Source of the DNA: Phallusia mammillata
Taxonomy: Eukaryota
Reading direction: 5' to 3'
Assembly (NCBI GenBank): GCA_965637545.1
Contig: OZ281495.1
Location: forward strand, 24,676,001 to 24,740,000
DNA length: 64,000 nt
In this document: positions 1,990-61,900 of the stretch, piece by piece
How the letters are laid out: each line of letters opens with the position of its first letter
Position numbering within the stretch: position 1 is the first letter of the stretch
Position numbers and translations under genes: made by a program
The notes under the pieces: generated by a model
Told to the model about the DNA's origin: nothing
Seen by the model: the letters and a program-made list of their open reading frames with translations, nothing else
Databases searched by the model: none

Positions 1990-4900
1990 GTAAAGTTGTT
2001 GTAACTAAAATTTGGAACAGTGTTTTGTTCCTTAGCAATGATTAATGATGGCTTGAACGTATTATTCTGTTTTTTTCTAAATAAGTACGTTTGTTTGACA
2101 AAAAAAGTTTTCAGTTTTTTAAATGTCAACAAAAAGACTAGTAAACCACTTTGCGTCCGAACTATCTATAATATTTTTTAAGTTTAAAGCGCAACAAGGT
2201 TTTAACAAGACTTACATTTGCTTGTAAAAATACAATAATTTTGCTACAAGTTTTTTATCCCTGTCTAAATAGATTTTACTATTTTAGGTTCTGGCCCTTC
2301 CTATTCATCTGGTTCGCCTGGAGCCAGTCACGGTGGTAGAGGAGGTCGGTATGTAAACAGCGGAGCGCCGTTGCCACAGCAACCCTACGGATACGTTTAC
2401 GCGATTGGATCTTGTGGAAGCGGAGGAGGAAGTGCAACTTCTTCATCACTAGGTGGCCGCGGTGGTGGAAGACTGGAACTCAACATCACTAACGATCTTA
2501 CCCTCAATGGAAATGTGTTTGTCAATGGAGACTCGGCCAAAGTATAATGTGATGTTTTGTAATAAAGGTTTTTTGGGCGACAGACTGGTTCTTCATTCAA
2601 ACCATGGCCACACGTTCAGCGGTTTTTAGGCCTAGATTTTTTACGAATCGGTCTACTTTAATTTTTCGAATGCAAGTGGTCTGGCTTAACCATAACAAAT
2701 GTCCCATTCTACCCGTTTGCTTGCGTTAGGTCTATACATTTAAACAGAATGTAAATTAATTCGTTTAAATAAAAAGAAACAATTAAGTAGATACGCGTGT
2801 AACCGGAATCTCAAGTAATTTGCATGAATGAAAAAAAGTACTTTTATCCGGAATTTTAAATGATTTATTTAAATGAAAGAAAAACATAACTTGTTATAAG
2901 ATGAACAGAAATTTTGGGTGAATCGTTTAAAACAAAAACATTGTCCTTCTAGGGTTCACATTCTGGTGGTGGAAGCGGTGGTTCAATTTGGATCAAAACG
3001 TTCGAGTTATCAGGCTCCGGCAAAATATCTGCTAATGGCGGTGTTGGAAACTCAAACGGAGGTGGTGGATCTGGTGGAAGAATCGTCATTTATGCGGATA
3101 GCGGGGATTTCAGGACAGGGCACATCAGCAATAAAGGTTTGAACTCTGAAACAAACAAAAGACCGTTTCTCGTTGAGATAAATATGACTAAAATATTCTG
3201 CAAAAATGAGGGGAGGCAAAAAGTTTTTTGAAAGTGACATTGGAAAGTTTGAAAACACCCGAGTGTTTGAGACCAAAAAGGATTTTTTAATATTTTTAGT
3301 GGGCATGGTCCTTTTTATCATGACTGCGTATCATGTCCTGTAACGTTTTCAATCAAAAATCTTGTTTCATACCTAGAGTTTTATATACATGGTTACAGTT
3401 CAATGGAGTATGTACAGCAATTCTAAAAAATCCTAAAGTTGTTTTCGGATTCGTTTCGTACCGAGTTAGTTTTCGGATTTTCCTTCTGTTTGCAACTTCT
3501 TTATTATTGTGTAGGTGGCGCTGCTGGGAACGAAAACAGCGAACCTGGAGCGGCCGGTACCACATACTATGAAACGGAAACGGCCCGGATTTTGCGCGTC
3601 GACAACCAATGCCAAAAACCAGTTGTCACTATTCCGACAAGCACAAGGGCTAATGAAGAAAATTTCTACGAGTTTTACAACACAGGTGTGAAACACAATC
3701 ATTTGTTTTCTATTCTATTTCTTATCGATTTTTTTGTGGATAAAATATTTGTTATTCAGGATAAAGTGTTGGATTTGGACTAATAAAATATGCAATTTTG
3801 TTTAATTCTTTAGACAACTTCTCAGAAACATGCCTAGTAGAACGGTAGATAATATTATTAGTTTAAAACAAGTTAACGATATTGATTTTTTTCAGGCGCC
3901 GTCACCATCTTAAAGCATAAAACTGACGGAAATCCGCACGATTTTACTTTGATGGAAATTTACGGTGGTTCTCATTTAACACTTGAAGATGTGGTAGTTC
4001 CTTCGTCAGGCAATGAAACTGTTGAACCTGACCTTAAAAAGTCTGTGGTGACGGCTGGTCTTGTTGGTGATGACACTGGTTTTGTGCATATTCCACCTTA
4101 CGTTTCAATGCACTGGAAGAAGGTAGTTGTTTCGTTTTGTTGCAGCTGTTTAAGTTAAAAAAACAATTCGATTTCTAATGTATCGTCTTTTTTCACATGT
4201 TCAAAACATACTTACGTTTTGAAAGCCTGCCTGACTGAGCAATTACATTTATGTCCGCAACGATACGGTTTTTCTACAATTGCGAGAAGAAGAAAACTTT
4301 TTTAATTGTCAACTAACGAAATATCTAAAAATATGAGTTTAATGATGAAAATAACGGTCAATGTAGACGTAAAAGGCGACATTCTTTATTGTTCAAACGT
4401 TTTGGCAGATGCTCATGCCAAAATAGATTATTAATATTACTATTTTCACTAAGGCATCAACGGGTGAAGGCGTGATACTGTGTGTATTGGTCTTGCATAA
4501 AATCTCGAACTTTTGGGTTTCTGCATTTTAGGTCGAGCGCTACAGCTTCGCAAACATGACTGTGATGCCAGTAATCTACGAAAAAGGTCTTTTTAAACTC
4601 CCGAGTGCTACAGTAGAATTTCGACCAGCCTTCCACGAATACAATTACAACAGGTATGGCTGGAATCTAACAATATCTTAACTAACCTATAGGCTCTTTT
4701 CGACAAACTCAATTAAATATCAACCTCAATATTGTCTGTTACTTCAATGTACAGCTGGCATACAGTTGTAAACAAAAGAATCTGGCTTTATTATCTTGTA
4801 TTGTCTGTAACTTTTTATCAATTGTAACGTAATTGATGGGCCTATTCGCCTTTTATGAGTATAGACGCCCTTGCTTTTGCTCGTGCACTTTATACTGGGT

Positions 4901-7900
4901 AGAGCTGCTATAACAAGTTCTCACAACACCAAAAATTGCTAAATACAATCCTAATAGCCCTAACCGTCGGGATTTGTGTACAAATTGCATTTGAAATATT
5001 TACGAATGCTCTTTGTGTCACCTAACGGTAATTAGCAAAATAATCTGGTGTAAGTTCTCGTGTTTTTAGATTTTACATTTCACTGACGATGGCAATTGTT
5101 TTGTCGAAACTTGTGCTTCATTGAATGTCTGCGTTTTTTTCTAGATCCCTGGCAATCTTGTTTTTATTGATATGAATTACGATTGTAATACCTGTTTGTT
5201 GACTATGTAGCTCTGATTCTAAAAAAAAACATCATATCATATTAGGGCCTCTTATATTTTAATGTGACACCCATCTCATAACAAGTATTTTTGCACAGTA
5301 AATCTTGCTCCCAATCTTTTCTGACTGGAACTCCTGGAAGTGGAACAAGACGATTTCCAATATGGGGAACACTTGACTCTTATGATGCTCATCTTCTTGT
5401 AGCATCATGTAAGCAAAACATTTTCAAGGCCATCTATGCAAGCTTTACGTATTTTTGCATTGACCAATGTTATGTGTGCTTTTCTTGCATTGACCAATGT
5501 TATGTGTGCTTGCAGATGCGACTCTCAGTTATCAACTGCCCCATATTCGAACCATAAATGCGGTCGGCGTCACTGTGCAAAACAAGGGTCATCTGGAATT
5601 GAACAGCCTGGATGGTCTTGAAAGCGATCTGTGGGTGGTGAAGGTAGGAAGATATTTTGTCCTACAAAAGTATTTTAACGACTTTAATTGCCGCTTTTCC
5701 TGATAAAAACATTTAACTTAGTATCTTTATTTTATGTATACACCATGTTTGTATGTGCAGATGCGTAACGACGACGGTACAGATTACCGAAGAGGTGAGC
5801 TGACCATTGAAGGCCATGGAACAATGACTGCTCGTTCGCTTTATATCAAAGCACAGTCGGTGACGATAGACGAAAATGCTTTACTGACTGCTAACGGCAA
5901 GGGAAATGTCGAGGGTACAGGTGTCGGATACGGTAAGTTCGTTAATAGAAATCGTGGAGAATAAAATGCCTGTTTGTGTATTTGGAGTTTTGTGAACATA
6001 TTAAGTGCAATCCAAGTAAAAACGTTCCAATCACCCACAAAGTCTTTACTTCACCACATACATATTTAAGGTTTATGTTTTATTTTATCTGTCACGGCCG
6101 TACAGGTAACTATTTCTAACCTATATTGACTTTGCGTTGTTTATCAACGTTTCTTGTTGCTGAAACCGTCACAGATTAGAAAAAAAGGATCTTCAATTAA
6201 ACTTTGTTGTAGCAACTGGAAAAATTGCTGCCGGTGGAAGTTACGGTGGTCAGGGTGGCCGAACTGATGATTCTGATGCCAATGCGGGAATGACCTCGCC
6301 TACACAAAACGATCCTGTGTATGGAATCATTGCAAAACCAACTTTGTTCGGTTCTGGTGGATTGGGAAACCTTGGATATGGTGGAAGTACTGGTGGAGTG
6401 GGAGGAGGCTTCATCAATATTACTACATCTGTGCTAACAGTTGAAGGACTGTTGTCTGCTGATGGGTCTGGTTCCACTACTGGCAGTGGCGGAAGTGGAG
6501 GTAATATTTTGTTTGTCTAGTTTAGTGATTCTTAACATTTTTTGTACGTGTAATTTTGGTTTTCAGGACGTCATTTTTTTGCGACGTCATAGTTAGCAAT
6601 CTTTGTTTGTTTACGGGGTAACACTCATAAAAAGGTTAAAAACTACTGGTCTAGTTTTGCACCACTGCAAGGCCTCTGTTGATGTGTGAATTTACATCTA
6701 ACCTGTAGTTTTTACCAACCCTATTAAATCTTGTTAGTCATTCTTTAAAACATTACATTTGTTATTTGTCAACAAATCACCTTAAGCTTTGCGGCTGTAA
6801 TCCCAATCATGAGTAAAAAACAGTGATTTTTTTTTATCTATGAAGTGCTGAAATCACTACCCAACAGTGAATTTTTATCTATAAAGTGCTGAATCACTAC
6901 CATGTTATGCATGAGTGATTTCGGCGGGAGAAATTTTCTTTTGTTGCTGTTGGTTTACAGAAAAGAAGACAAACCATTTTAAGCGTGCGTTTTAAAACGG
7001 TAAACTAATAACTAGATTCAAACACTACTGCTATGTACGTTTGTGATGTTAAAATTCAGTTATTCGTTTACTGAATTGGCAGATAACCAGGTTTTTGCTG
7101 CTTTATTTGTTTATGTGATAAGTTGATTGAAAAGTCGTCATTTTCGCTACATTTTTTCAAAACTGCACAACTTTTACACTATAAATTTATTTCCTAACTT
7201 ATAGGTAGTGTCTTCATTACCACCAGCTGGTTGGAAGGCCACGGCAAAATCACCAGCAACGGCGGAGCTGGTTCCTGCCAGGGTAAAGCGTCCAACACAC
7301 TGACATGCGGTGGTGGAGGCGGTGGTAGGGTTGCTCTACATTTCGAGAACGATCTGCGATGGTGGAAGGGCGAATTAAGCAGTTATGGTGGCTCTGGATC
7401 AGTTGGGTCTTCAGTCGGTGCTTACGGTGGCGCTGGAACTGTGCTGTACTCGTACAGATTGTTGAAAGCTGGCATTGAAACTAACTGGTTGGATGTAAAG
7501 AACCAAAGAGGTATGTCAAATCTTGCGATAGTGTGTTTGTATAATTGTATGTAGACAACAATAACGTATCGATTTTATCTGACTTAACTTGCCGGTTTGG
7601 AGTTACAATTCTTGATAACATAGACCGGATAAGGTTCAATTAAGACAAAAGTTTAGGAAAAATAAACTGCATAAACAATAGCTGGGCAAAACTGTTTTCA
7701 ATACCCATCTTAACTTAATAAGTTAGGCTTAATTGGGGTGTTTAAAGGTTTCGAAATAATACTATAGACTTGTTAGCTGGAAACTGTTTTTATTACATAT
7801 CGTGGTCAATGTGTTTTCAGGTGCACTAAGCAGCACATCGATTGAAGACGGACTAACCTCTCTAGCGCAAACCGCTTCGAGCAACGCGACCAACTCGAAT

Positions 7901-10900
7901 AGCAGTCGCAAGCGCCGCAGCATCACCACTGGAGCGGAATCTTTTGGTTTCAACCGTGTGTCGGTGAGGAATGGAGCTCGCCTGGCCCTACGCCAAGACT
8001 ACGTGCGACTCGACTCACGTCTTCTTATGTCGGGCGACCGAACAGGCTGGTTACATGTGAGATCAGGACAAACCATCGTCATCGGTATGTATTGATTTGT
8101 ACATATAGTTTCAAGGACACGAGATTAAAAGCAATTTCGTTACCAAAATATACAGATTACTTGTTAAAATCACTATTTTTACCACAATAGAAAGTTTTTC
8201 AGACAATCTCTGACAATAACTCTCCTAGATATTTTTGAAGAAAAAAAAAATCCCGTTGAAGTTGATTTGTTGCTGTGTGTGTGAAGCATAAAGGACCAAA
8301 ATAATTGCAACAAAGCTTGGGGGCCTAAGTGTAAAATGTTTCCAGTTTCCTATTCTGCAACAAATCAAGTGCAATGGCACATGCTTTTCAAAAATACCTT
8401 TTTTACTAGGTTTCATAAAATATTTTTTTAACAGTGAAGCAGTAGCGCCATTGCAGTTATTTGTCAATTTAAAGTCATTTCTATGCACTAAACTAGCTTT
8501 CACTTTAATTTGTTACCATATTATTTCTCTAGGTGCATACAGCGATACCACTCCTTTCCAGTACGAAAAATTTAAACGTATCGAATGGGGCGAGGTTCAA
8601 ACGAATGTGTTTGTGCACGAGGGCGGAAGCCTATACCTGTCGCCCGATACCTCTTGTCGCGGTGTGAGAATAATTGTCATGGGAACCATCGCCGTCCGTG
8701 ACTTTACCGTCGCAGCTGGATGCAAACTTCAACTTGGACCAACTGGAACGACGAAGATCCTTTCTTCCAGCAACGCTAACAGCACGAATCACGACACCAC
8801 ATCAGTGACGGGCATCTACAAGTTTGTATCGTTATCAATAGGCGACCAGGGAGAGGTTTCGGCTTTGGCTGGTTCCGCCGACTTGGAGAACAACGTTACG
8901 ATTGTAGCCTTTGACACGATTCGTGTTTTCGGCGGTGGTTTACTGCATGCAGTTTCCGTGAAGCTTAAGGCTCACAAGTTGATTGTTGACGACTTGGGTA
9001 CGATTTCGGGCGACGCCAACTCTATTTCTTGCCACGGTGATCCACACACGACCACCACAGCGGACGATCTCCTCCTAACTGGTTCCGGAAAGAGCGGTTC
9101 TGGCGCGTCGGGCGCTGGACACGGAGGTCGCGGAGGGCGAGGCACAGGGCAATGGCACACAGGTGGAGCCTACGGTAGCATGTACGACCCAGAAACTCAC
9201 GGATGCATTGGAGGTAGCGACGGGTCTTATTCCGGCGGTCGCGGTGGTGGAAACGTTGTTCTAAATGTAACCGGTGAGATGCAGATCGATGGACTGGTCA
9301 CAGCCAATGGAGAAACTGCTACTGGAGGTTCAGCAGGTGGTGGAAGCGGAGGCAGCATCGTTATACATGTTAACAATATGCGGGGGTACGGTGATATCAC
9401 TGTTAACGGGGGTAGCGGTCATGCGTCTGGCAACAACATAGGAGGTGGTGGCGCTGCCGGTAGAATCGCTGTTTACTTTCTTTCCAACAAAACCTACTCC
9501 GGATCTTGGCAAGCACATGGTGGAAAACCGGGTTACGAAGCGACAGGAACTCGTACTGGCTACGGTGGACCTGGTACAATGTTCTTCTATCACTTGGAGC
9601 ATAAGCATACAACGCTTATAATCAACAACAATGGCCATGGACCGGACAAGGACAGCAACTACATCGAGGATTACGCCGATCTAACCCAGGACGAGTCACG
9701 GGCTTGGTTTTTGCCTACTCACCGCGAACACGAGTTGTCCGGCAGCTCACATCACTTCTACTTTGATGAGCTTCAAGTGTGGGGCAATGCACATTTTGCG
9801 ATATCACCAAAACTGGATGAGGAAAATACTGCCTCAAACAATACAGGTACGCTGAAATGCTGTAAACTTAAGTGGTTGACAGAGTAGTAAGGTGAGACAG
9901 GCTTTTCGGGTCAGGTTTATAGGCTTAAATATGACTAGAACGGGCTTCATTGAGGCCTTACTTTACACTCGACATCAATGGTGCCTAATTTGGGCTTGTG
10001 CTTTCGGATTTGGGCCACAATTTTGGGCCGTCTCTTAAACTCTTAACCTTTGTATCTCTCCTCGGCGAACTTTAATGCTATAATGCGGTGAGGAAATTTT
10101 GTTATGTTGACTGTTAAATTTGTTGTGATGTCAATTATATCAGTGATGTCGAAACAGGAACACTTTCTTTATGGGCTACTATTCGTCTATACCAGTGGTT
10201 CTCAAACTGGGGTCCGCGGTCCTTTAGGGGTCCGTGAGGCAATTTTGGGAGGAGCGCGAAAAGGTTGGGGTACTTTTATAATCTTCTTTGGCGTCAGTTT
10301 GTGACACTGAATTAGGTAAAATCAAAGTATAATTAAGAATCGACTGTCTCCGTTGCTAAACAATAGCCTGAATTGCATGACAACTAAGAAAAGTGCATCT
10401 GTTCGCGCACAATCGTAATGTTTTTTGTCTTGTCAGTGATGTCGCAAGCTGTCTTTGGATCATTGTTATGGGCAATTTTACAAAACTAGCTAAAATCCCA
10501 CAATCAACTTTCGTATTTCTGAAATACACATTCAGGCTTAAGGACCGCGGGCACTTGAAATAATGGCAAAGGGACCGTTTGGATAAAAATATGAAAAAGT
10601 TTGAGAACCACTGGTCTATACTTTGTAGGACGTCTATGTTGAATTGGGGTACCTTTACTATTATGACATCTTTGCAACTCTGTGTGTATAAAAACTGGTT
10701 TATCACATTTTTCTAGGAAACTCGACTGACCAAGGACCTGAAACTACGATATATTTCAAGCACATGATCGGTGATCGCACTGGAGCTATTCACGTTGGAC
10801 CACGACAGAGTCTAGATCTGGAGCGAGCCTTTATCGATCTTCCGTTCAGCGCCCACGTGTATAAGCTGGGTCACCTTGGTCTGGCCCCTGTTACCCACAT

Positions 10901-13900
10901 CCACGGGGTCACAATCTGGCTGAGTGGGGCTCTCACCCACGTACGCAACGTGACTGTGCGACTTGGTGGACGTCTGTGGCTAAATCGAGACGGTAAGTGA
11001 AAATCCAAATGACGTTTGTTTTAAAATTCTGTTTGCCTAAAATTATTCTAACTTGCATTTATTTTGTTTAAAATCGTATAACTATATTTAGCAGCAAATC
11101 AATCACGTTTTTGATGAGCGGGTTTTGGTTATTTAACTTCTTAATCTTTACGGTCTTAAAACAAATGTTTTTACCAGGGCTGGGGAGTCGGGTACGAACC
11201 TCCGACTCAAACTTCTTCCAGAAATTTTAAATTTAGACTCCGAAAAATTTGTAATGGGTAGAAATGTTATTAATCAACAAAAGTAGGTTATACACAAAAA
11301 AAAACACTAAAACAATTTAAATTTATGAATCTTTTTGTATCCAAAAAGTCCAAACCAAATTAAGGGATTCGTAGTCAGCCAATTTCCCCCACTTTGAATC
11401 GGACTCAGTTAGCTCAAAAATGTCTCCGATCCCTTGACTCCCCAACTCTGGCTTTTACAATGTTTCAATTCATTGAGCGTTTAACTTTTTGTTTCACTGG
11501 AAATTTGCCAGAAGAGCTCCATAAACTTGATATTATGCCTGGCAGCAATAGCTTATATATTCGTTTCACAGGTCGCACCGCCAGCAAATACGACATCGAC
11601 GATTCTTTTTACTACCCCGAGCTTGACGACGACGAGTTTGCTGGAAAATTCCGCTTCGACTGGATGCATGTCCAAGATATGGGCTTGGTTCATATGATCA
11701 ACGATCCAACCAAGGACCCTGGGACCGAATTTCGAGTCATTGATCTTACGGTTGACGGAGGGGGTCAAGTGGAAGGGACTCATGTGTATGTACATGCCGA
11801 GGACATCACTATTGACTCCGGTGGACTGGTGACAGCTAACGGACAGGGATACGGATTGCAGCATGGTGGTCCACAGTTTACCAATGGCTCGCTAAATATG
11901 GGATACCACGGCATAATCAATCCAGGTATACTAGCTAAATAGTCACACTAATAATTCTTGACATTAAAAACAATCTGGATTTCCTCCACTAGTTCCTACG
12001 TTTTTGTCTTGTTTACCCTGGCTTTGAAATACAATGAAACATGAAAATTCCTCCTGGACGCCTTTTATACATCAATATTTTATGCACCAAAGATTTGCTC
12101 ATTTAAATTTACCCCCGAGTTAAGAACTTTTGCTTTAATGGATTAAAGACCATCAAATAGAGGATCTAAAATTACTAAATTTTATAATGCTAACAACTTT
12201 CGTTCGAATGCAGCAGGTTAGCACTGAATCTGCAGTTGATAATTCCTAAATGTAGCCATTGTCCTATTTTCTCGTGATCAAGACAAACCATTAAAACTCT
12301 TTCTCTTCCCTTAGGTATTGGTTTCGCCGCCAGCAGCTACTCGAACGGGGCTACACCATCAGGCGCTGGTCACGGTGGTAGCGGTGGACACGGACGCGGA
12401 ACTGGTGTGCTGAAAACTGGTCAACCATATGGCGACCTTTACGAACCAGAGGCGTTTGGTTCAGTTGGTGGTGGACCATCTGGTGGTGCCGGTGGTGGTC
12501 GTATCTGGTTGAACGTTACTGGTATGATCCACATTGATGGTACTTTGTCAGCGGATGGTGCTGCTGCCGGATCTCACAGCCAAGGAGGCGGAGGTGGAAG
12601 TGGAGGCAGCATCTGGATGCACTGCAACGTTATCTCCGGTTATGGTGTCGTGTCATCGAATGGTGGATCTGGCGCTGCTAGTGGTAACGGCGGAGGCGGT
12701 GCTGGTGGACGTGTGGCGGTGTACTTTAACAAAAACATCACTTTCAGGTACGTGCCAAATATTGGTTTTGGTTTCATAAACGTTTGTCTTGTTAGGCTTT
12801 GTAGCAGTTAGTTTTGTTAGTCGACCTGCTACAATAGTTTCGTGGTGACACCTACGACGACTACGTGACTTCTGGCAGCTAGCGATTCTTTAACCACAAC
12901 ATTAGGCCAACAACTGGTACTTGAGAAAACACATGAAGCAAAATTAAAACCGAAAGTTGGGCTTGTTTATTTATCGCATGACGAATTGTAAATAAACATG
13001 TTTTGGTGCCGCGAATAGCCATTCATGGGGACTTTATGTGTCAATGTTAGTGCCCAGATAATTGCTATTATTGCATTATCCTATGTTTTTGTCACGTTTA
13101 TTTATTACAGTGTAAAATAGACGTACAACAGAACCTTTACCATTCTGTTGCATTATCACTTTGTTTTCGCAGTTCCTTTACGTTCCACGCCCACGGCGGT
13201 CGATGCCAGGAAGACACATCCAGTGTTTCTCCGAGATGCGAGGTAGGAGGAGCAGGAACAATCTTCCTCTACCACCAGGTTGAGAAGCACACAACGCTTC
13301 GTGTAGAAAACGGAGGAACTAGCATCGGAACGCGTCGCCTCTTCGCTCTTCCAAGGAGCAAGCTCGTACTCTGGGATAACCTTGAAGAGGACGGAGGTAG
13401 AGCGTGGATTTTGGCTGCAACATCCGGAGGACACAAGTTCGCCAATTTTGGGCACGACTTTCATTTTGATGAGTTCCAGGTGTGGAAAATTATCGCCAAA
13501 ATTAAAATATTTTGTTCATCATACAAAAGAGTTAATCTCATTACCAACTTGCTATTTTTTATGCATTTACCCGGACTATGTAATGAGCCAAATAATTTAC
13601 CAAACCAACGACCCTTATGCAATTTAACGGATTTAAGGTTACCTAGATTTGTCTGCATAGACAATTTAGGTGTTTATCGTTGTTGATTTGCAACAGATTT
13701 CATCTATTGTTTAGGGATAAAGGCTTTATCATGGTGCTATGCTTTCGAGATATATACGTTACGGTGCAAGAATATTGTGATTTAAATTGTTAATTCCTAT
13801 ACACAGGTATACGGAGGAGCACATCTGGCAGTCATGGACCCGGACAAGATTCCTCCCGATCAGCTCTGGCGCTACCAAGTGACGGTTATTACCACTCGCA

Positions 13901-49900: not shown

Positions 49901-52900
49901 CAGCCGGTTTGGACTTGGATTGTTATGAGTTATTGAATACGGTAGCTAATGAAGTAAAAGGATAATATATGATACAAAAAGTATGACAAGTACATGTTCG
50001 TTATTTAGGTGCATGGCGGCAAAGCTGTTAGTTTACAACCTGAAGTTAATTGTTCTTAACCCTCTTGAAGAGTTATTTTGTTTATTCACTCGTTAGGTGG
50101 ATAAAACTGTTTTATTGGTCTGCCTCAGTACCCTGGACTAAACAGTTTTTACAAAGTTCTTTTATTTATAAGTTTGTTTTGAGTAAGTTTTACAAAGACC
50201 AACTGTTGGATATACGATTTTCGGTACAGTCACCACAAACCTATCCAATTTAAGTTTCTAACAAGCGTTTCAGTTTTGTTATTTTGTCCTAATAACCTGT
50301 ATCTATTTAGATTGTTGGTGGTGGCGGAGGAGGTGGAAGAATCTCAGTGTCAGCTAACTCGTCTTACACGTTTGTTGGTGAAATGACTGCGTTCGGAGGA
50401 AGGAGTTTATCGGAGAACGGTGGTTCGGGAACTATGTATGTGATGAAGAACTCCAGTTACAGTGTGCTGTCTGCTGACAACGAAGGATTTAAACCGACGT
50501 TTGATTATGCTGCTGGTGAGTTTTCTTATCAGCGATTCTTAGTGTGGGCAAAGACAACAAGCGTGCCGTGATATAGCCGGCCTACGTTTGAGGGCTATAA
50601 CGAAAATGCAAGTTTAAAGTTATTCTCTTAGTCAGTGTCTCCTGCATGTCAAATAACGAAGCACAGGTAATAATTGTCGTGTTGATCCAAATAAGCAAAT
50701 TACAAACAGTTTTCATTCAGTTTGTAATAAGTTGTTTGTTTCCAAAATTGCATTACATTTATCAACTGAGCTTATGTACAGACGATCGTGCATCCCGAGT
50801 AAGGTACGACAGTGGAAGAACTTACGCATTCCTGGATGACACAAGCACTTCACATGAAATATCTCAAGTCGAAATCAAACGTTCTGCCCATCTTGTCTTT
50901 GAGAAGGTAAGTTTAGTCATCGACTGCCCAACAATCTGTGACTGTGTTGCAGCCAAACATTGTTAAAGCACTTTAATGCAAAACAATACTTGTGTTTTAA
51001 ACATGGTCAAATTTTCGACAAGGCATGTTGCCATTTCTAAGTTAACTCATAAACAGCGCTTGTAATAAAAATAATGGTTTAACTTCAATATTTGAAAATA
51101 AAAGAAAAAATATAGAAAATACTTTTCTGTTAAACCAATCAATAAAATAGTTTAGTTTGCACAAACATGCGGGTTTAAAAATATCCCAAAATCTTTATGT
51201 TTGTTTTTAAATAGCGTGGTAGCGAGGAAGACAGGGTGAACTTATCGATTGACAAACTTGACGGAGATCTCACTGGTTTCTTGCATTTGATCGAGGAAGT
51301 GAAGTCGACAATCGGCAGTGGAACTTCTTCGCCATTCCCATCCGGTTTGCGAGTTTATCGGGCGGCTGTGACGTCACTGCCAGACACTGTGCTTTTCAGT
51401 CAGCTGTCGTATGAGGTGGGGGAGTTTTTTTGTTTCATTGAAATATATCACTATAGTTATTACACAATAAATTAGCGAGTATTTTGCAAATACTTTTCTG
51501 CGTAATGCCAAAAAAAAAATTTTTTTTATGGATCACACATTTTAAATTTAATAATGTTTGGATAATATAGCATTTTCGCAGTCCAAAATACTAATTGCAA
51601 ACAATTTAAGCTTGTTTTGACAATTCAACATACCCTTTTGCCCACAAACAAGACGAAACACATGAAATACGCAAACTTGTCGCAGGGACACAACAAACCT
51701 AATATCAGCATACGAACTAAGCATAAAACATTTATTTAGATATTTGTCAAAAATGGTTATGAAACTTCAAATTACTTTGGTTTGAGAAATCAATGTTATG
51801 TTTCTGTTTTTAATCTCCGCTTCATATTTTTTAGAATATCTTCGTTGCTGGTCTGATCACCAACCTTCAAGAACTGACCATCGGTAGCCAGATGGCTTTC
51901 CACATATTGGACGGTTCAAGAATCTCATCATCTCCAGTTGCGCCCGAGGAAGAAGATCCACTGGGAGGAGAATATGAAAGATATATCTACATGACAACAT
52001 TAGACATTCTTACAGGTGCAAATCAAACTTTTATATTTTATTATGTGGTAAAACATCTCTTTAAGAATTCTAAATTTTGTACTTTGTTAAGTTTTGCAAC
52101 AGTGTTACGAAGGATATTCGTGTTTGTTACCTGTAATGTAGTACTTTTAAATTGGACGATCTTTTTTGACACTAACCAGTCCTGTATTTTACCAAGCCAC
52201 GGCTCAGTGTTAACACACCACTAGTTTCAATTACATACCTACTTCCTTTTTTCGCCAAAAACTCTTCAATTTCATATTGGCCATTGGTGACCGTTTTTCC
52301 GAAAATCTGTTCCAGCCATAAGTACACTATTCACGGTTTTGATCAAAAAATTCAATCATTTCATTTTCACAAACGTTGTTCGCAAAAGTACCAGTCCAGT
52401 TCTAAAAGAGACCAATAAAACACCATGTTTTTCTGTGTTTCAGATGGCAAGTTTGTGGCTGGCTACACAGACGACATCGTCCCTGCAAACCCCAAACCGT
52501 CCCTCACTCTTAACCTGACACAAGATCTGAAACTACATCCCGGTGCTCGTCTTGTCGCTCCCTGGCTTGACGTCATCGATGTTCGTTCCGTGAACATCGA
52601 CCGCTCGGCAACTATCAGCTCAGTGGGACTTGGTGATGACAATGTGGGAGGAGGACTCGATTCCACATCAGGAGGAGGATCTGGAGGCGGACACGGAGGA
52701 AGTGGAGGAGAAGGACGCGATAAGGTTATTTGACTGCAACTGTGTTAGTGTGTCTCAATTGCAAAGCATTGAGGTTTTTCGTGTTGCTTTACTGCGTCTG
52801 TAACAGGGGTAAAGAATGGTTAGAAATTATTTGCCTAAACCCCAAACTATAGCATTATTAAAAAATAATAATTCACTATATTTAAACTATGTGTACAAGT

Positions 52901-55900
52901 TTTTCGTTATTGATATAGACTGCATTATTCGCCCGATTTTAATATATTGTAGTTTGTTTCAATGACACTAATCAGACCCAAATTTAGGGGCTATTGCTGT
53001 AAAACAGTGATTCTCAAACGCGGCTCTCAGGGCCGCATGCGGCTCCCAACTACTTATTTTGCGGCTCCTACCAAACCTCAGAAAACCACTAAAGATTGCT
53101 ATTTAGCGTTCAAAGTAATAATCTTTAGTGATTTTCTCAAGGTTTTGTTTTTTTGCGGCTCCCTACACACTTAAAAAACTACCATTTAGTCCCGACAATA
53201 AAAAAGTTTGATAACCACTGCTGTAAAATGTAAAATCTGTTTAACTACGCTGTATTTCTGTAAGCTGTTTTGTCACCTAGTGCAAGTTGAATTCTTGGTC
53301 GTAAATATTATTTGCCAACAGCACCTAAATTTATAAGAACTGATGATGTTATTATATCGGCTAAATCGATTTTTTATTTGTAATATTACATAATGAAAAA
53401 CACAGACTAATGTAAGTGTACTCAGAGCTTTAGTTAAGTATACACGGAAACCTAAAGCAATGTCTTCCTTTGAAATAGTCCGTGGTTGGTCACTCCTTTG
53501 GATCAATGTACACCCCTCGTCATTTCGGTCAATCTGGTGGAAGCGGTAATGGTCTGGAAGGTGGAAAAGGTGGTGGAGCATTGGCGTTCATTGCTCGGGA
53601 GAAGGTAGAGATCGACGGTAAAATCGACATGTCAGGTAGCAGCAGCACGATTGGTGCTAACAACATCGGTGGAGGCGGTGGTTCCGGTGGAAGCGTTTAC
53701 ATCACCTGTCAAACACTGGCTGGTCAGTGTAACTGTTGTTTGTTTGGATTTATAGATGGCGTTTTTATTGTAGCCTATGTTACTGTAGCGCTCCTAAGTA
53801 AGGCTAAGGTTAGAGGTTTAGCAATTACTGACTTTAAAAGTAGCTTTATCTGCTGCTTTTAAAACCATTCTAATATAGTTTCAAAACACTGTCGTTTCAA
53901 ACCGTTTACAGATTGGTGATTCGATAATTTGCATTTAGGCCTGGGACAGTAAATGAACTTAAGGGTTTTAAACTTCTTGGTTAAAACATGGCCGGTTAGG
54001 TATAGATTCGCCTGGAATACACATTTCTCTTATTTCGGAATTATAATCTTCAACCTCAAAAAATAAATTTATATTGCCAAAAACCATATATTCATAAACT
54101 GGCCGATTTTATTTCACCATATAGTGTGAACGTTTGATGGTAAATACCATGTGGCTAATATTTGTCGTTCTAAACAGGAAACGGTGAAATCCATGCGAAT
54201 GGAGGTTCTGGTTCAGGAGGTGGAGGCGGTGGCCGCGTTGCGATGTGGTTTTCTAACAACATTTACGTCGGATCGTTTTCTGCCGTCGGTGGACATGGAA
54301 CTTATGAGCCTGGTGGCGCAGGTAATGACCCATTAGAATCAAAACTTAACTCAATTTATAAGTGTTTTTGACTATTTTAATTTTATAAATAAGTACCTGT
54401 TTTTGTATCTTTGTATTATTGTACTTTTATTAGGATTTCTGAGCTAATTATACGGGTTTTCTCTCAAAAATTTCTTTCATTCTTTTTTATCCTTTAGGAA
54501 CCATTTTGCTTCGTCAGAAGGTTAATGCGTCATCAAGCTTTACGATGACGTCGTCCGGTTCGTTTTATGAAGACAAACTTGTGGTTGACAACGCCAAGAA
54601 CCCGGATCCAATAACATTTTTGGTGAACTTCTACAATCTGCTTTACAGCAACCAACGCGGAATAGAAAGTACAAGGTCAGAAAGAGAAGTGGTTTTGTTA
54701 ATTTTTAACAAATGTCTAGGATGAAGTAGGCCGCGTGTTCGGAACCAATCATCTCGCATTTGTTAAAAATCTGCTAAATGATGTGACCTTAAAATAAACC
54801 GTGCAAGCACGTCTGGTTGAAGTAAGAGCATAGACATGAAAGCTCAATGCTAGGTTATACATAACATTTGTTGTTTTATCCCATACAAATAACTGTTCGT
54901 TATACTTTCAGAACTTTCCTGATGGATGAGCAAGGCGATGAAGATATTCGCGACGTGAAATTTAAGTCAGTTGACTTGAGAGGACATGCCCATCTTGTGT
55001 TGTATCCTGAAGTGGAGGAAATGAACATGACCATTGGAGAGAGTGTCGGAGATAGAAGTGGGACTTTGCATGTCGGACATTACCAGGTAATTATACATCA
55101 CAATATGTGCGCCTGTCCAAATACTGACTGTGATCTTTTTGCTCAGCATTTTTTTAGATTATTGAAACTGCTTAATTACGAATTTGTACACGCTAACTAA
55201 CATAGACTTTTGTTTGCCAACCCATTTCAGGAACATAAGTTGTAGAAAGCCAAGTTTTTAAAGTTCAGTGACTTTTACTCGTAGCCTACTTTACTGAGTT
55301 GTATCTGTAACTTTGTGATTTAAATTAATCCTTTATGTGTAGTCTAGCAGTGTCACCACCAATAAAAGCCAAATCAACCATTTATCTCTGGTTTCAGAGT
55401 TTGGACGTCGCACTTCCATCTACTTCTCCTGAACTCATGTTTGGTGTTGAAATCTACGAGAAAGCTAAGATGAGGAGTGATGGCAATTTGTTTATCAACG
55501 ATGTACGACTGATGGTTAGCGGTTTGTTGAACGGAGCCCACACACTGGAGGTCGGACACAACGGAGAACTTCACTTTACGTGCGTATCTTATAAACCTTT
55601 TTCACAAGAATCAAAAAAGTTTGCAAAGGGTAAAAAATTATTACAGAACCTACAAAAACCGTTGTACTGGATCTTTTGGAAATGTTCAAAATGCTAAGGA
55701 TTTTTTAACTAAACACTTTTACATATCAAATTCACTCTACTCGAAATATAAAAGTGGTAGAGACAACGCAATGTAACTGTTTGTGTTTAATTTTTTCTTG
55801 TCAAAAATCTGACACCATCTATAAATATAGTTGACCAAAAATTTTGATCACCTGAAACTGAAAGGTAATCGATAATAAGTGCGTTTTTATAGCCAAAAAT

Positions 55901-58900
55901 AAGGCCTCCTGGAGCAATATGTTGATTATTTACATGTACGGACCTGTGCCTATGAACAACGATTAATTTATGTTTCAGACATCTGGCCAACCTCACTTCC
56001 AACGAAACATCAGCCGAAGACGGTGAAGACGACGTAGCAGTTATTCCATTCACCAAACTTATTGTTCACGGTGGAGGAAAAGTTTTTGTAGAATCTGGTA
56101 GAGCGGGAGTTGAACTTCAGGTTTGTTACTGATTTTTGCATTCTTTTTTTTGAGTTCATTTTTAGGTGTTTTGGTCTTTAATTGCCTTTTCAAACATTTG
56201 GTTTTGTAGGGTGATCTGGTGCACGTTCATGCTGGTGGATCTATCAAGGGTGACAAACTGACTATTAGATCAACTGAACTTATCGTTGAGGACACAGCTT
56301 CCATTGATGTAAGTATACCTACTCTTCTTAGCAATCTCAATTTATTTTTTACCCTTTTTCCTTAACTGTTGGCCTTGAGCCGGTGAAATTAGCAAACAAA
56401 AATAGAAAAAAGGCTAGTCATGTGATAAATTTATTTCAAACTTATTGTTTTCCTTCTATGACAATATAAAATCTAATGTGTTCTAGCGTGTTTCAAGATT
56501 GAAAATTGCTAGCCGCTGTTTATTCAGACTGTATATATGGACCAAAAAATAACCTTACGGGCTCATAACGTTATTTACACAAAAATAACATTGTTTGAAA
56601 ACACATATAGGTGACTTGCAACACCAAATGGCACGACTGTCACGGCAGTGGTTCGGTCCAGTTCACAACAGAGGACACATCAGGTGCCAGTCATGGTGGT
56701 GTTGGTGGGAATGGAGATATGACAACCACTGAGTCGAACAGACTAAGAAGACCGCACGGAAAAATAAATGACCCCCAGGTATCGTTTAACTTCATAAATT
56801 CGCTGTCTCAGAAATCCTAGTTAAGTGATTCTGGGAATCTTTCCTAATTGGTTTGCAATTCTCGTAACGATTTCCACCTTGCATGTTATATGCCACAAAT
56901 TTGGTAGCATTAATTTTCTTGTTAAAATCTGTTGCCTATCTCTTTCTTTGTTGGTGTATGTTTTGAGAAGAGGTCACAAATTTGTTTTTAGTTTTAAATT
57001 TACGTGTTAAAATACCTTCACATACAATTGTAGTAATTCCTATGCATTTTTTTAGTTCTGTATGAAAAATCTAAACAGTTTGAGCAATATATTTATTGTT
57101 TTGGTCGAGAAAAGTCTAAAATAACCCTATGGGGCAACAACTTGACCTAGGTTTTTGCAAGAACAAAGGCTTACGAACTCAATGTATGAGAAATAAGTAC
57201 ATTTTAAACCATGATCTTTTTCAACAGAGCTTTGGCGGTAGTGCAAGCGCAAGAAAGTCACTTGGTGGCGGTATTCTAAACATCGTATCGCGGGATATTT
57301 GGTTGGATGGAACTCTTAGCGCGAAAGGACGAGATGGCGTTTCACTGGATGACGCTGGTAGGACGCGTAACGGTGGTGGAGGTGCTGGTGGAAGCATCCT
57401 TATCAATGTGGAGGGATTGATCCGAGGAACTGGACTTATCCATGCCGATGGTGGTGCAGGTAAGGATGGTAACAAATAAGGCTGAATTAGCTTGAGGAGC
57501 CAAAGTTCTGATTTTTTCCCTCTCAAAGAAAAATGGCCCTTCGAAATAAAATCTAACTTTTAGATTCATGATTTTGTCTCATCACAGTGAATGCATATAT
57601 AAATAAACGTCTAGGTTCTGGGCACTTATGCTTTAATATTTCACTTGGAAACCCACCCAAGGGCGCAAATATAGACCAGTCTTTCCGACACCAAGTGCTT
57701 TACCCACTTTTAATTTCCTAACTACCGACCCTTTTCTGGTTTCAGGACACCAGAATACAGCAGCAACGTTCAGCCAATCAGGATGCGGTGGAGGTGGTGG
57801 TCGTGTCGCCATCTTTTACCCGTCCTCGGTTGACCCTAACAGCCTGACTACAATGAGCCTGGGTTCAGCTTGGCAGGGTGAAGTCCGTGCTCGTGGTGGT
57901 TACGCTTGGTCACGTCGTAGTGGTGCAGCAGGTACAGTCTACTTCCACGAGACGAGAGGTTCGGTTGTCAAGAGGAAACTCCTTGTGGAGAACGGTGGTC
58001 ACGTGATCCAAACGGTAAGTTATTTATCATTGTGCTTTTTTTTTTTTGTAACTAACCGAATTTTTTCGGCGGTTTGTTATTTATATACGCTCAATATCGT
58101 GGTCTAAATATGCTGTCCCCGTTCTTTCTATGTATGTTTGTTTTAAAATTCGCTAAATTATTAAGTGGAACACAAAATTAAAAATATAGTTTTAATGTAA
58201 TGATGGTAAAACGTCACGTTTGGAAAATAGCATTTGCTCGGTCACAGTAACAATATATATTACTTTTTATTTTACCCTTTTCTTTTAGACAAAAAAAAAT
58301 TCAACGGTTAGCTTGTGTTTGATAATTTTGGCTGAAAACATTGTAAACATTTGTTATAACTTTGTTTTCAGCCTACGTCATCTGTGTCATATTATGACAT
58401 CATCGATGCGAACGTAGCGGTCACGTGGCTCGTTGTTGGACCAGAACCTGTCAGTTCGGCGAGAAATGGCGACATTCTTAACCCTCTAAGATCAGAAGCC
58501 AAGTTTGATGAACTTCACGTTTTGGGCGCTGCTCGTCTCTCCGTCCTCTCAACAGGTTTGTTTTTATATTTTCACGATTTCTGATTTGGCCATATGACTA
58601 AAATATTTGTAACTAAGGATATTGTAATGTAATGATATTGTTTAGGATTATTATTTCACAAACCAATACTAAGTCTGCAACGTTTATTCGGTGTTTTTTT
58701 TTTATATGTCTAAATATTGTTACCAAGTCTCGGTATAACCGTTATTTGCAGTAATATATACAGCACTTAAAGCCGACATTTTATATTTCAGTGTGAATGA
58801 AAATTTGCCTACCTTTTGGCTGCAATTATGCCTTTAAATATTGTTTGCTCTTACAGGAGAAGGAGATTTCAGAGACGACCAATTGGAGATCGGAACTTTG

Positions 58901-61900
58901 TACGTAGCCAACCCTCGTACAACAACTATACTACCAACTATCGACATCGGTAATATACACTTTTGTAAAGCAGTTCCGTATTTGTGTCACAATCTGCAAA
59001 AATCGACTCTCGGTTGGTCGAAGATTTGATCTGTATACAATGAATAAATTCTTTACAACGTCTACCATGAATGTATTGACTATAGAAAAAATCTTTCTGG
59101 CAGTTCAATTAGGTTATACTTTTTAAATCCATGTCTTCCTATACTATTATTGAGAGGGAAAGGGGTTTTAATGAATTTCGTTTAAGGTTATTCGCATCGT
59201 TTAGTACTTCAATCATAATTTGTTGATTTTTTGTGATAATTAGGCACCGATCGTTTAACTGCATAATTGTAAATCTTTAAAATATGGATTTCGCAAATAT
59301 TGGCTTGATTCGTGTGTCTGCAAATAATCTATACTTGGCTTACAAAAACAACAAAACTGGTTGCCACAAACGTAATGGAATTTAACATACACAGCTGGAG
59401 ACGGACAAACTATAACAATTCAAACTGTCGGTCACTATCTGGGCGCCAATCTACACGTTCACGAGGATTCAAGCGTAAGCGTTGCCACTTTGACGTCACT
59501 CAGTGGCTCCACAGCGCCGAGTAGTGGCGGAACGGTTGTTTTGGGAGCCGAAGTTACATTAGAAGGCACGATGGTCGGATTCGGCAACTTGGAGCTGGTC
59601 GACAGCAAACTTTACTTCGGACCAAAAGGAAGGTAGGCAACTCATGCAAAACTGCTGTAATTAAATCATTGACTTTGGCAAATGTTGATCAACATGGTAA
59701 ATTTTGCTTTCTGCTTTGGAATGGCTGTAATACCAAGCCATTGAGTTGGTCATCGATTTACTTTTTTACGCTTTTGACAGATACACCAATGGTCCCGTTG
59801 TCGAATCGAAAGAAGGTGCAGTGTTACAAGCCAACGACCTTACTATTGGTCCAAAGAGTCACGTGTTGTTCCTTCCATCTAACCTTCTAGCTGAAACTGA
59901 CGACAGAAATATCACTTCGGAAGTCAAGGTAAACTTACAATCACAATAAAATCGTTCTTTTGGCTGTGTTTTCCGTACCGACGTCCTCTGCAGGTAGTCT
60001 ACATATACTACAACATGGTAAATAGTTCAAAGCGATCAATATAGCAAGCAGGGTTGCACAAAGAAGAAACATTAGAAGTGGAAATTGGAATTGTAACATT
60101 GTCCCAAGGAGTGTTTAGATTTAAAACACGTTTGTTGGTATTTTAAGGTTTCTACTTTGCTCGTGGAATCACTTGGATTGTTGCAAGGCAGACGACTTCA
60201 CGTGAAAGCCAGTACAAAAGTGGATATTGCTGACGGAGGTCGAATATCGCTTGATAAGATGGGATTCGGACACGGAGAAGGAAAAGGTAACAAACTGAAA
60301 TGATGACATTTCAACGTTGAATAACGATATTCATACACTTTTCATAAAAAGTATGTAAATTAGGAAACTGACACTGTTCAAAATGAGCTATATCTCCCCC
60401 TCCAAAAGACCACATTATTATTGACGATTGGAAATAAATAACTGGGTATGGAGATCGGTTTCAAACTTGTTTAAAACCATTTGCATAAGAAACTGGCGTT
60501 ACCATTTAGGTCAAATGCTGGATATATTTGAAAACTGCTTTTATTAACCAATTACTCAATGTATAAGAAAACGTTGTGAACTCTCGGCAAATTCCGTACT
60601 TTAAATTGATTATGAATGTTATTAACCTGGAAACAAACAACACAGGTTCAAGTTCACATGACGAATTCCGGTTCCTGGGTGGATCACACGGGGGCCGCGG
60701 TGGTTCCCCCGACGAGAGATTTGTCCCCTTCGAAGACGATGACGATTTCTCGAAACCCACTCACTTCGGATCAGGAGGAAGCGGGTTGTTGGCCGGATCG
60801 GGTGGAGGAGCTATACACATTGAAACACGTAAAACTGTCTTTTAATAATAAGTAGTGATCCTCATTACCAAAAAAATGCAAATAGTTTTTTTATTTCATT
60901 GCGATTTTTTAGCTGGAATATTATTTCCCAACTGCACGTGCAAATATTTTATTTGAATAAGTCATCTAGTACACTAATTTTTGTTAAGTGATTTGTGATG
61001 TACAAAAACTGCGACGGTAAAAGATACTTGGCCCAAAACAGACACAGTTGTGCCAAAGGCTGAGAAATGCTGCTGTATTGTTTTACAATGAAATTTGCGT
61101 TTTAGCTTCATTGAAAAATGACGGCAACATCACAAGTAACGGTGGAAACGGTACAGCTGATCCTTACAGACAGGGAGCTGGTGGCGGCGCAGGAGGAAGC
61201 ATTTACATTCAGGTATGAAACTATTTTTAAACGACCAAAAAAGTGAATTAAATTACGCTATTAACCGACGACCAGTAGTGGGTGGGAAAATAGGCACGGG
61301 GAGAAATATAAATTAAATGTGCGTCTTTGGTTGCTTTGTAAGCTTTATATGTCACTCCACAGGTCGAGTCGCTCTCAGGAGACGGCATTTACTGCGTTAA
61401 CGGAGGCAAGGGTTACTTTGAAACATCCGGTGGAGGTTCTGGTGGTTTGATCGCAATCGACTACATCACAGCCACCAAAGAAGTTACGCTTGATCGGTTT
61501 TCGGCCTACCATGGAACCGGCGAGGTCCCGGGTGGTCCAGGACTTATTTATCTTCAATGTAGTGCTGATGTTGCGCAGCCGACTTTCTTGGAAAGTTCAG
61601 TTGATCCATTGCTCACCGTTTTGCCATCGTACAGCTATACACAACTTGTTGTCAGAGGTAAGTTTACAATTATCATGGTTTTTCCTAGCTTAGCTGTGTA
61701 CAACCTGCGAAACAGATTTCTATTGTCAAACACAAAAAATAGTAATATGGATAAAGGCGATGTGCATTGACTGAAACACATTAGTTAGATAATTTGTTTC
61801 CATAACTGGGCTTAAAGTATTTTTTGGATAAAAAAAGATGTATTACAGTTTAAATAGACACACGCGCCCCAACTGCTATTGACTGTTTGAAGGCTTATGT

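Follow-up and report, generated by a model that had tools for sequence, protein, structure and literature searches.

Only a few solved proteins have ordered glycine helices, namely two springtail antifreeze proteins, Obg, acetophenone carboxylase, phage tail tips and ALK/LTK (PMC12227593, PMC13243192), and GGX motifs are the signature of glycine-rich polyproline II (PPII) bundles (PMC13243192). In the springtail and snow-flea antifreeze proteins (7JJV, 2PNE/3BOG) the helical segments lie ~4.7-4.8 Å apart, parallel to one another in the same layer and antiparallel from one layer to the next, so that the bundles are in effect flattened solenoids (PMC12227593). In the ALK/LTK glycine-rich domain (7LS0, 7N00, 7NX1), ALK has 14 polyglycine II (PGII) helices of mixed orientation on a TNF-like domain. 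The beta-helix adhesins, such as EtpA (8CPK), HMW1 (2ODL), FHA (1RWR), the autotransporter passengers and Candida Awp, form long extracellular adhesion rods. Here we describe a 64,000-nucleotide stretch of the 240-Mb genome of the sea squirt Phallusia mammillata (contig OZ281495.1, C2:24676001-24740000; hereafter the window), which carries a tandem array of units, each built around a glycine-run module of ~190 residues. We incline, if only slightly, to the explanation that the window belongs to one giant gene for a secreted protein, in which the units would form a continuous solenoid rod with a PGII-like glycine wall and a structural histidine.

The sea-squirt module resembles the antifreeze proteins in its G-G-x runs, and these glycine-rich PPII bundles are the best structural match of the module when it is taken in isolation. 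Unlike them, however, it would have a single glycine layer, the other layer being a normal beta-sheet with a hydrophobic face, and while they are proteins of 6.5-15 kDa the module would be part of a rod that runs to thousands of residues. The two are unrelated in sequence, and the module bears no sign of ice binding. The unit as a whole is best matched by the beta-helix adhesins, at 16-19% identity driven by glycine and with no match to any of their Pfam families. It differs from them in its coil of ~35 residues with a glycine run of 5-7 residues in each and, in contrast to the bacterial and fungal adhesins named above, it is encoded by an animal gene with introns. With the ALK/LTK domain it shares ordered runs of consecutive glycines and an extracellular setting; however, in place of helices of mixed orientation, the sea-squirt model has one run per coil, all of them parallel. 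A further connection leads to the G8/beta-helix proteins (TMEM2, CEMIP and PKHD1-type proteins, and bacterial G8 proteins of Lentisphaerota): several relatives of the module start with a G8 domain above the Pfam cut-off (32.5 bits in P0043 and 29.3 bits in P0060), the neighbours of the module in the ESM Atlas are G8 clusters, and the TMEM2 ectodomain scores Z 8.6 against the unit model. The G8 and PbH1 models themselves exclude the glycine-run module, and the first exon of the window has no G8 match.

We used AlphaFold2 to model the coding part of unit 3 (8589-9827, 413 amino acids) with a 109-row alignment, and folded its core (9009-9623, 205 amino acids) separately; all searches and fold predictions were run on single exons or database proteins rather than on a joined spliced protein. 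The 413-residue model has a predicted local distance difference test score (pLDDT) of 89.4 and a predicted template modelling score (pTM) of 0.91, with strand pairs recurring over its full length, and the core alone has a pLDDT of 90.3. The coils of the unit model stack into a continuous solenoid, as in a right-handed parallel beta-helix. Each model was compared in structure with 48,161 representative chains; the 50 best matches went down to Z 7.7 with the unit and to Z 3.6 with the core. The best solved matches of the unit are the secretion-domain beta-helices of EtpA (8CPK) and HMW1 (2ODL), at Z 15.6 over 225-232 residues with deviations of 4.3-4.6 Å, and these alignments span model residues 1-401. 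As many as 41 chains reach Z>=8, and all those among the matches listed are beta-helices. A mollusc cluster whose model in the ESM Atlas was predicted independently gives a TM-score of 0.86 on superposition. Foldseek against the PDB gave nothing at E<0.1 for either model, its weak matches to the unit model being beta-helices, and aligning its 34 candidates a second time yielded nothing further. On the strength of this model, we are confident in predicting that the near-complete unit is one continuous beta-solenoid. An earlier reading of these letters, made without database searches (the sequence-only reading), had proposed a beta-solenoid and had pointed to stretches of alternating V/I/L strands; the fold is upheld by the prediction, and solenoid strands are indeed predicted in parts of those stretches within the folded exon. 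The route that it proposed, prediction of a single unit followed by a fold search, led to a confident solenoid whose core best matches PPII/PGII-bundle proteins. Each unit would fold into part of a single, continuous right-handed beta-solenoid; units joined in this way would make the array a long stiff rod, of perhaps ~7-9 nm per unit and a few hundred nm overall.

The modules have four coils of ~35 residues each, with a recurrent syntax: an 11-12-residue strand of alternating hydrophobics, a D/N-G turn, a 3-residue strand, an A-N/D-G-G turn, a loop and then a glycine run that leads into the next long strand. Ahead of the first long strand lie ~80 residues with run 1, a Y-G-S...P motif and run 2; this N-terminal stretch has no strand assignment, with a pLDDT of ~92-96 from about the 30th residue on. 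The glycine runs have likewise no strand assignment in either model (the DSSP output merges PPII into 'other') at a pLDDT of mostly 93-98. Hence, the disorder that the sequence-only reading had named as the outcome that would tell against it was not seen. In a 97-row alignment the non-glycine positions within the runs lie 3 apart (38/41/44, 75/78, 113/116, 149/152 and 185/188), whereas the strands alternate by 2. The period stands out most in run 1 (G-G-H/Y-G-G-x-G-G-x) and in run 4 (G-G-G-S-G-G-S) and is also clear in run 6; the G-G-x or G-x-x spacing of glycine-rich PPII/PGII bundles is found in all five runs, the statistic being weak over such short segments. The best match of the isolated core is 7JJV, the nine-helix PPII-bundle antifreeze protein of Granisotoma (Z 7.0, 102 of 126 residues, 3.7 Å), followed by the secretion-domain beta-helices of FHA (1RWR; Z 5.7, 83 aligned residues) and EtpA (8CPK; Z 5.3, 103 aligned), the snow-flea antifreeze protein (2PNE; Z 4.9, 77 of 81 residues) and phage S16 gp38 (6F45; Z 3.7, 111 aligned). 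The Bxb1 tail tip (9D93), which contains PPII bundles (PMC13243192), scores Z 3.0. The topology of the antifreeze bundles is that of a flattened solenoid, as in the predicted model of the unit.

These patterns suggest that the glycine runs, together with two further runs in an N-terminal strand-free stretch of ~60 residues, would stack in register from coil to coil and form a glycine wall and cap packed on the beta-sheet, most likely with a PGII-like conformation. We rate this wall as likely because three lines agree, namely the lack of strand assignment at high pLDDT, the period of 3 and the PPII bundle as the top match; we rate it as unproven because none of the three gives backbone geometry, Z scores of 7 are common and the autocorrelation is weak. 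The conformation is thus read from the model and the alignment and not from backbone angles. The sequence-only reading had paired a PGII bundle with a solenoid: the ordered runs, their period and the match of the core to 7JJV speak for the pairing, which is thus borne out in part, but the model gives no sign of a separate, ALK-like bundle. Nor does the model have the platforms that were supposed to alternate with the solenoid, since it places one run per coil within a continuous solenoid.

The window contains no long open reading frame; with a G+C content of ~39%, it carries its coding sequence in many exons on the + strand. A profile built from an alignment of the module (A1) detected 15 glycine-run modules in order on this strand, from 2287-2538 to 61360-61590 (per-exon E 1e-9 to 3e-96), in keeping with the repeat units previously placed at 2288-61657. 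They are listed below with the sequence of their first run; unit 2 and units 5 to 15 were delineated by profile and motif.

Unit 1: 2287-2538, 2956-3144 and 3517-3621, + strand; GASHGGRGG; profile E 1e-16, 3e-18 and 5e-3.
Unit 2: 5767-5937, 6218-6511 and 7204-7452, + strand; GGSYGGQGG, with the sole Tyr of the window.
Unit 3: 8589-9827 (stop-free frame 8292-9884), + strand; GAGHGGRGG; nearly the whole unit in one exon, profile match 8622-9803 at E 3e-96.
Unit 3, glycine module (205-residue core): 9009-9623, + strand; within the folded 413-residue piece.
Unit 4: 11574-11873, 12335-12745 and 13177-13488, + strand; GAGHGGSGG; module 59% identical to that of unit 3.
Unit 5: 14700-14876 and 15138-15896, + strand; GAGHGGSGG.
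Unit 6: 17940-18164, 18699-19043, 19455-19745 and 20012-20212, + strand; GAGHGGTSG.
Unit 7: 21477-21833, 22191-22355 and 23005-23253, + strand; GASHGGMGG.
Unit 8: 27027-27173, 27466-27561, 28325-28507 and 29166-29285, + strand; GGAHGGSGA.
Unit 9: 32804-32932, 33242-33520, 34317-34406 and 34777-34938, + strand; GGAHGGRGS.
Unit 10: 38649-38810, 39616-39852, 40385-40573 and 40883-40987, + strand; GASHGSTGG.
Unit 11: 43232-43372, 43475-43522, 44204-44440, 45304-45390 and 45998-46123, + strand; GGSHGGSGG.
Unit 12: 48548-48829, 49115-49267 and 50317-50499, + strand; GASHGGKGG.
Unit 13: 52500-52718, 53485-53727 and 54174-54323, + strand; GGGHGGSGG.
Unit 14: 56219-56314, 56635-56775, 57231-57467 and 57757-58023, + strand; GASHGGVGG.
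Unit 15: 60139-60291, 60633-60836, 61099-61212 and 61360-61590, + strand; GGSHGGRGG.

Six-frame and profile searches of the flanks recovered, on the same + strand, one module upstream (window -8284 to -6069) and ~14 downstream (68060 to 126424). Hence, the previously reported count of 15 units is right inside the window but not as a total, because the array extends both ways and is truncated at the window edges. The window would hold 15 of at least 30 tandem units in a single giant gene, interrupted by introns, that encodes a secreted protein of the extracellular space. Modules of different units are 37-59% identical, and at this divergence the units appear to be old copies. The patterns GGSGGS[IVL] and GGGG..R[IV] recur 13 and 11 times in the window, respectively, and the spacing between runs 3 to 6 is 34-38 residues.

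Units 1 and 3-15 share a first run of the form G-x-x-H-G-G (unit 10 reads GASHGS), while unit 2 has Tyr at the site; a recount thus returned the same 14 His and one Tyr as the sequence-only reading. In alignment A1 the site is His in 67 and Tyr in 35 of 104 cases, and across 609 modules from 244 proteins it is His in 329 (54%), Tyr in 201 (33%) and Gly in 54 (9%), with His and Tyr both present in 79 of the 150 multi-module proteins. Co-variation links the site to positions 41, 59 and 63: His pairs with Arg at +3 and Y/L/F at 59, while Tyr pairs with Ala at +3 and T/S at 59. Such substitution and co-variation point to a packing or hydrogen-bonding residue rather than a metal ligand. The suggestion that this His binds metal was accordingly dropped on the substitution data, which make a metal site here unlikely. 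Position 38 (the His) and the next two side chains (41 and 44) would point to the same side of a G-G-x helix that borders the wall at its N-terminal end, where the first-run His or Tyr may be a structural part of the cap. Two other His motifs, AHL and GxIHVG, had also been said to recur; pattern matching found both, though they are general only in part: 6 units carry GDR[TS]Gx2-3H[VIL] (GDRTGxxHVG-type) and 3 carry G-x-AH[LF].

Conservation of the module extends well beyond the sea squirt: in bacteria and animals alike, five of its columns never depart from Gly, and conservation reaches 90% or more in 21 columns. An exhaustive search found 3,841 protein clusters with the module at E<=0.001, 332 of them at E<=1e-30. 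Most of the matching proteins are 1,000-6,500 residues long, with 3-11 copies of the module spaced ~300-460 residues apart, and domains found on the relatives include dockerin, CHU_C, Por_Secre_tail, G8 and Ig. Among the members that have a name are a dockerin protein from a planctomycete, 'beta strand repeat-containing' proteins from Bdellovibrio, and mollusc proteins, including one of Potamilus that is mislabelled as Tenascin-X. The best relative is an uncharacterised protein of the hemichordate Saccoglossus kowalevskii (4,555 amino acids, 10 modules), whose start resembles that of the sea-squirt gene: a weak G8 (18.2 bits, below the cut-off), one module and then an F5/8 type C domain.

No Pfam family was found on six exons of the window, on the module of long relatives or on 109 module segments (E<=1), in a Pfam copy without DUF8003 (PF26010). 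That family may or may not cover the module; a plant Atlas cluster with DUF8003 in 27% of its members matches the fold at a TM-score of 0.68. In NCBIfam the sole curated model that touches the module is NF047640 (gliding_AgmC_N), over ~150-290 residues at E 1.6e-4 to 4e-9 but with 18-36 bits against a cut-off of 275 bits; the N-terminal domain of Myxococcus AgmC is thus a distant relative that shares the module, which itself falls outside that family. Among PDB chains a phmmer search gave no match by sequence, and a profile search returned just the artificial GS linker in 2L6H. Literature searches turned up no beta-solenoid that has a PGII wall, and no description of either DUF8003 or the gene itself. 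Taken together, the module joins a predicted beta-solenoid to a probable PGII wall, with no family in the Pfam copy searched and no solved relative. A broader proposal, which we put forward tentatively and at somewhat less than even confidence, is that the 190-residue module represents a very large, uncatalogued class of extracellular domains common to bacteria and animals, with a solenoid wall of parallel PGII helices and a His/Tyr G-G-x cap.

Several points weigh against the proposed rod with its glycine wall. For models that lack a clear match, a Z of 7.0 is nothing unusual; PPII helices can also be matched by extended strands, and the two-partner-secretion beta-helices come close behind 7JJV at Z 5.3-5.7. 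The period of 3 is weak in runs 3 and 5, and autocorrelation of Gly is weak over such short runs. The models lie within a single unit of the window. The role of the His is drawn from substitution patterns alone, and kinship may inflate the co-variation. Finally, a search for RNA evidence of the gene came up empty: two sequencing runs containing the stretch cover exons and introns alike, have no splice joints and, given the intron coverage, look like DNA, while two possible RNA runs match only intronic repeats at 10186-10613 and 11503-11561. Some of these points fit a plain right-handed beta-helix in which the glycine runs are tight turns or beta-arcs that allow close packing, with neither PGII helices nor a wall of Gly-Gly hydrogen bonds. 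The whole-exon model matches beta-helices only, both at Z 15.6 and among those listed of the 41 chains at Z>=8, as do the weak Foldseek matches; the moderate score of the PPII bundle could stem from aligned extended segments, and runs 3 and 5 carry little of the period. However, the 5-7 near-invariant glycines exceed what a turn needs, the runs have no strand or bridge assignment at a pLDDT of 93-98, and their non-glycine residues are spaced by 3 and not by 2. Moreover, for the isolated core a PPII bundle outranks all beta-helices and two further PGII proteins are listed. We therefore regard a plain beta-helix as possible but, on balance, doubtful.

The remaining alternatives fare much worse. 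The conserved D/N before the invariant Gly at each turn, and a Z of 9.7 for the calcium-dependent beta-helical antifreeze protein 3p4g (one of many beta-helices matched), might suggest RTX- or PE_PGRS-type beta-roll turns that bind calcium, with His helping to bind metal. Such turns are very unlikely here and we rejected them: the GGxGxD nonapeptide is absent from 97 modules, in which the runs lead instead into A/S/R followed by a hydrophobic strand, the second residue past the run is not a conserved Asp, the coil has ~35 residues and not 18, the first-run site is other than His (Tyr, Gly) in 46% of the 609 modules, and the RTX lipase 2qua scores just Z 3.7. The sequence-only reading had drawn a comparison with the ALK/LTK glycine-rich domain, which would place a globular TNF-like fold with a hexagonal PGII bundle as beads between solenoid segments. 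What speaks for it is that comparison alone, with consecutive-glycine runs in both; but no Pfam match was obtained on the 109 module segments at E<=1, no PDB chain by sequence or profile apart from the artificial GS linker, and neither ALK nor LTK is among the 50 best matches in either exhaustive fold search. The model, with one run per coil, has no compact bundle, and a separate domain of this type, which we consider extremely improbable, was rejected for want of any sequence, profile or fold match. As for composition, the exons contain 15-27% Gly, as might be expected of flexible or elastomeric low-complexity linkers between strand domains, for which the confident model would be an artefact. 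This is scarcely credible in view of the five invariant Gly columns and the 21 columns conserved at >=90% across bacteria and animals, the 3,841 matching clusters (332 at E<=1e-30), the pLDDT of 93-98 in two separate predictions and the agreement of the independent ESM model of the mollusc relative (TM-score 0.86); disordered linkers were rejected on the strict conservation and the high pLDDT.

The surroundings of the array bear on the nature of the gene that holds it. The first exon, at L015:3569 (window -11431), has a signal-peptide-like start, and the left edge of the window cuts through a long exon:

Tail of a 1284-amino-acid exon: 1-873, + strand; exon L014:2022-5873 (C2:24673022-24676873), starting ~2,980 bases upstream of the window.

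Its upstream part matches dermatopontin in two stretches (Pfam, E 5e-31) and then F5/8 type C (E 4.5e-9), so that a pair of these domains on one exon precedes the beta-solenoid array; the part inside the window (searched as 16-876) is strand-rich and has no Pfam match. At the other end, the exon with the last module (L006:2020-2916) reads in frame into teneurin/tenascin-type EGF domains, and many such exons follow; this in-frame EGF array is probably the source of the 'Tenascin-X' label in molluscs. The EGF exons include L006:2020-2916, L006:3365-4303 and L013:983-1486 (window ~126020-135500) and continue to ~143000. Beyond them lie VWD-like, concanavalin-like and discoidin-like exons, the Pfam check having covered the EGFs only, and a (GGS)n stretch at window ~149500. 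The gene would therefore be ordered as a signal-peptide-like start, one glycine module, dermatopontin, discoidin, the long array of units, teneurin/tenascin-type EGFs and further domains.

Other observations concern the array and its copies. The segment at 23272-23895, after unit 7, has no Pfam match even at E 10 and no BLASTP match to the F5/8 type C exon of the gene; the segment, possibly an insert, may nonetheless fold in its own way. Two small contigs (C166:5499-17160 and C273:5391-12059) are near-duplicates of the 5' part of the gene, with the same matches as C2:24667716-24679126, and are probably uncollapsed haplotigs. A 532-amino-acid open frame occurs in two genomic copies, one inside the array just past the window (C2:24745409-24746152) and the other at C3:3254715-3255458, with a weak module match (E 2.9e-4); in a profile scan the same stretch (window 69385-70170) scores E 3e-34, and the frame may be a duplicated unit. 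The intronic interspersed repeats at 10186-10613 and 11503-11561 have very high contig depth in all four sequencing runs.

The signal-peptide-like start, the company of matrix-type domains and the location of the bacterial relatives at the cell surface suggest, by analogy, that the protein is secreted and acts as a very long stiff rod in the matrix or in adhesion. If the glycine runs do build such a wall, PGII packing would be no rarity but a principle by which giant surface and matrix proteins are commonly built. Thousands of unannotated proteins of 1,000-6,500 residues contain the module, which would thereby gain a name and a fold, and a naturally repeating scaffold for design would be at hand. 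The module would be the first PGII structure within a solenoid; with some ten PGII proteins solved so far, it would far exceed any other PGII-containing fold in abundance. For the sea squirt, it means that an unannotated giant matrix gene has been found, which may matter in adhesion or in the structure of the tunic.

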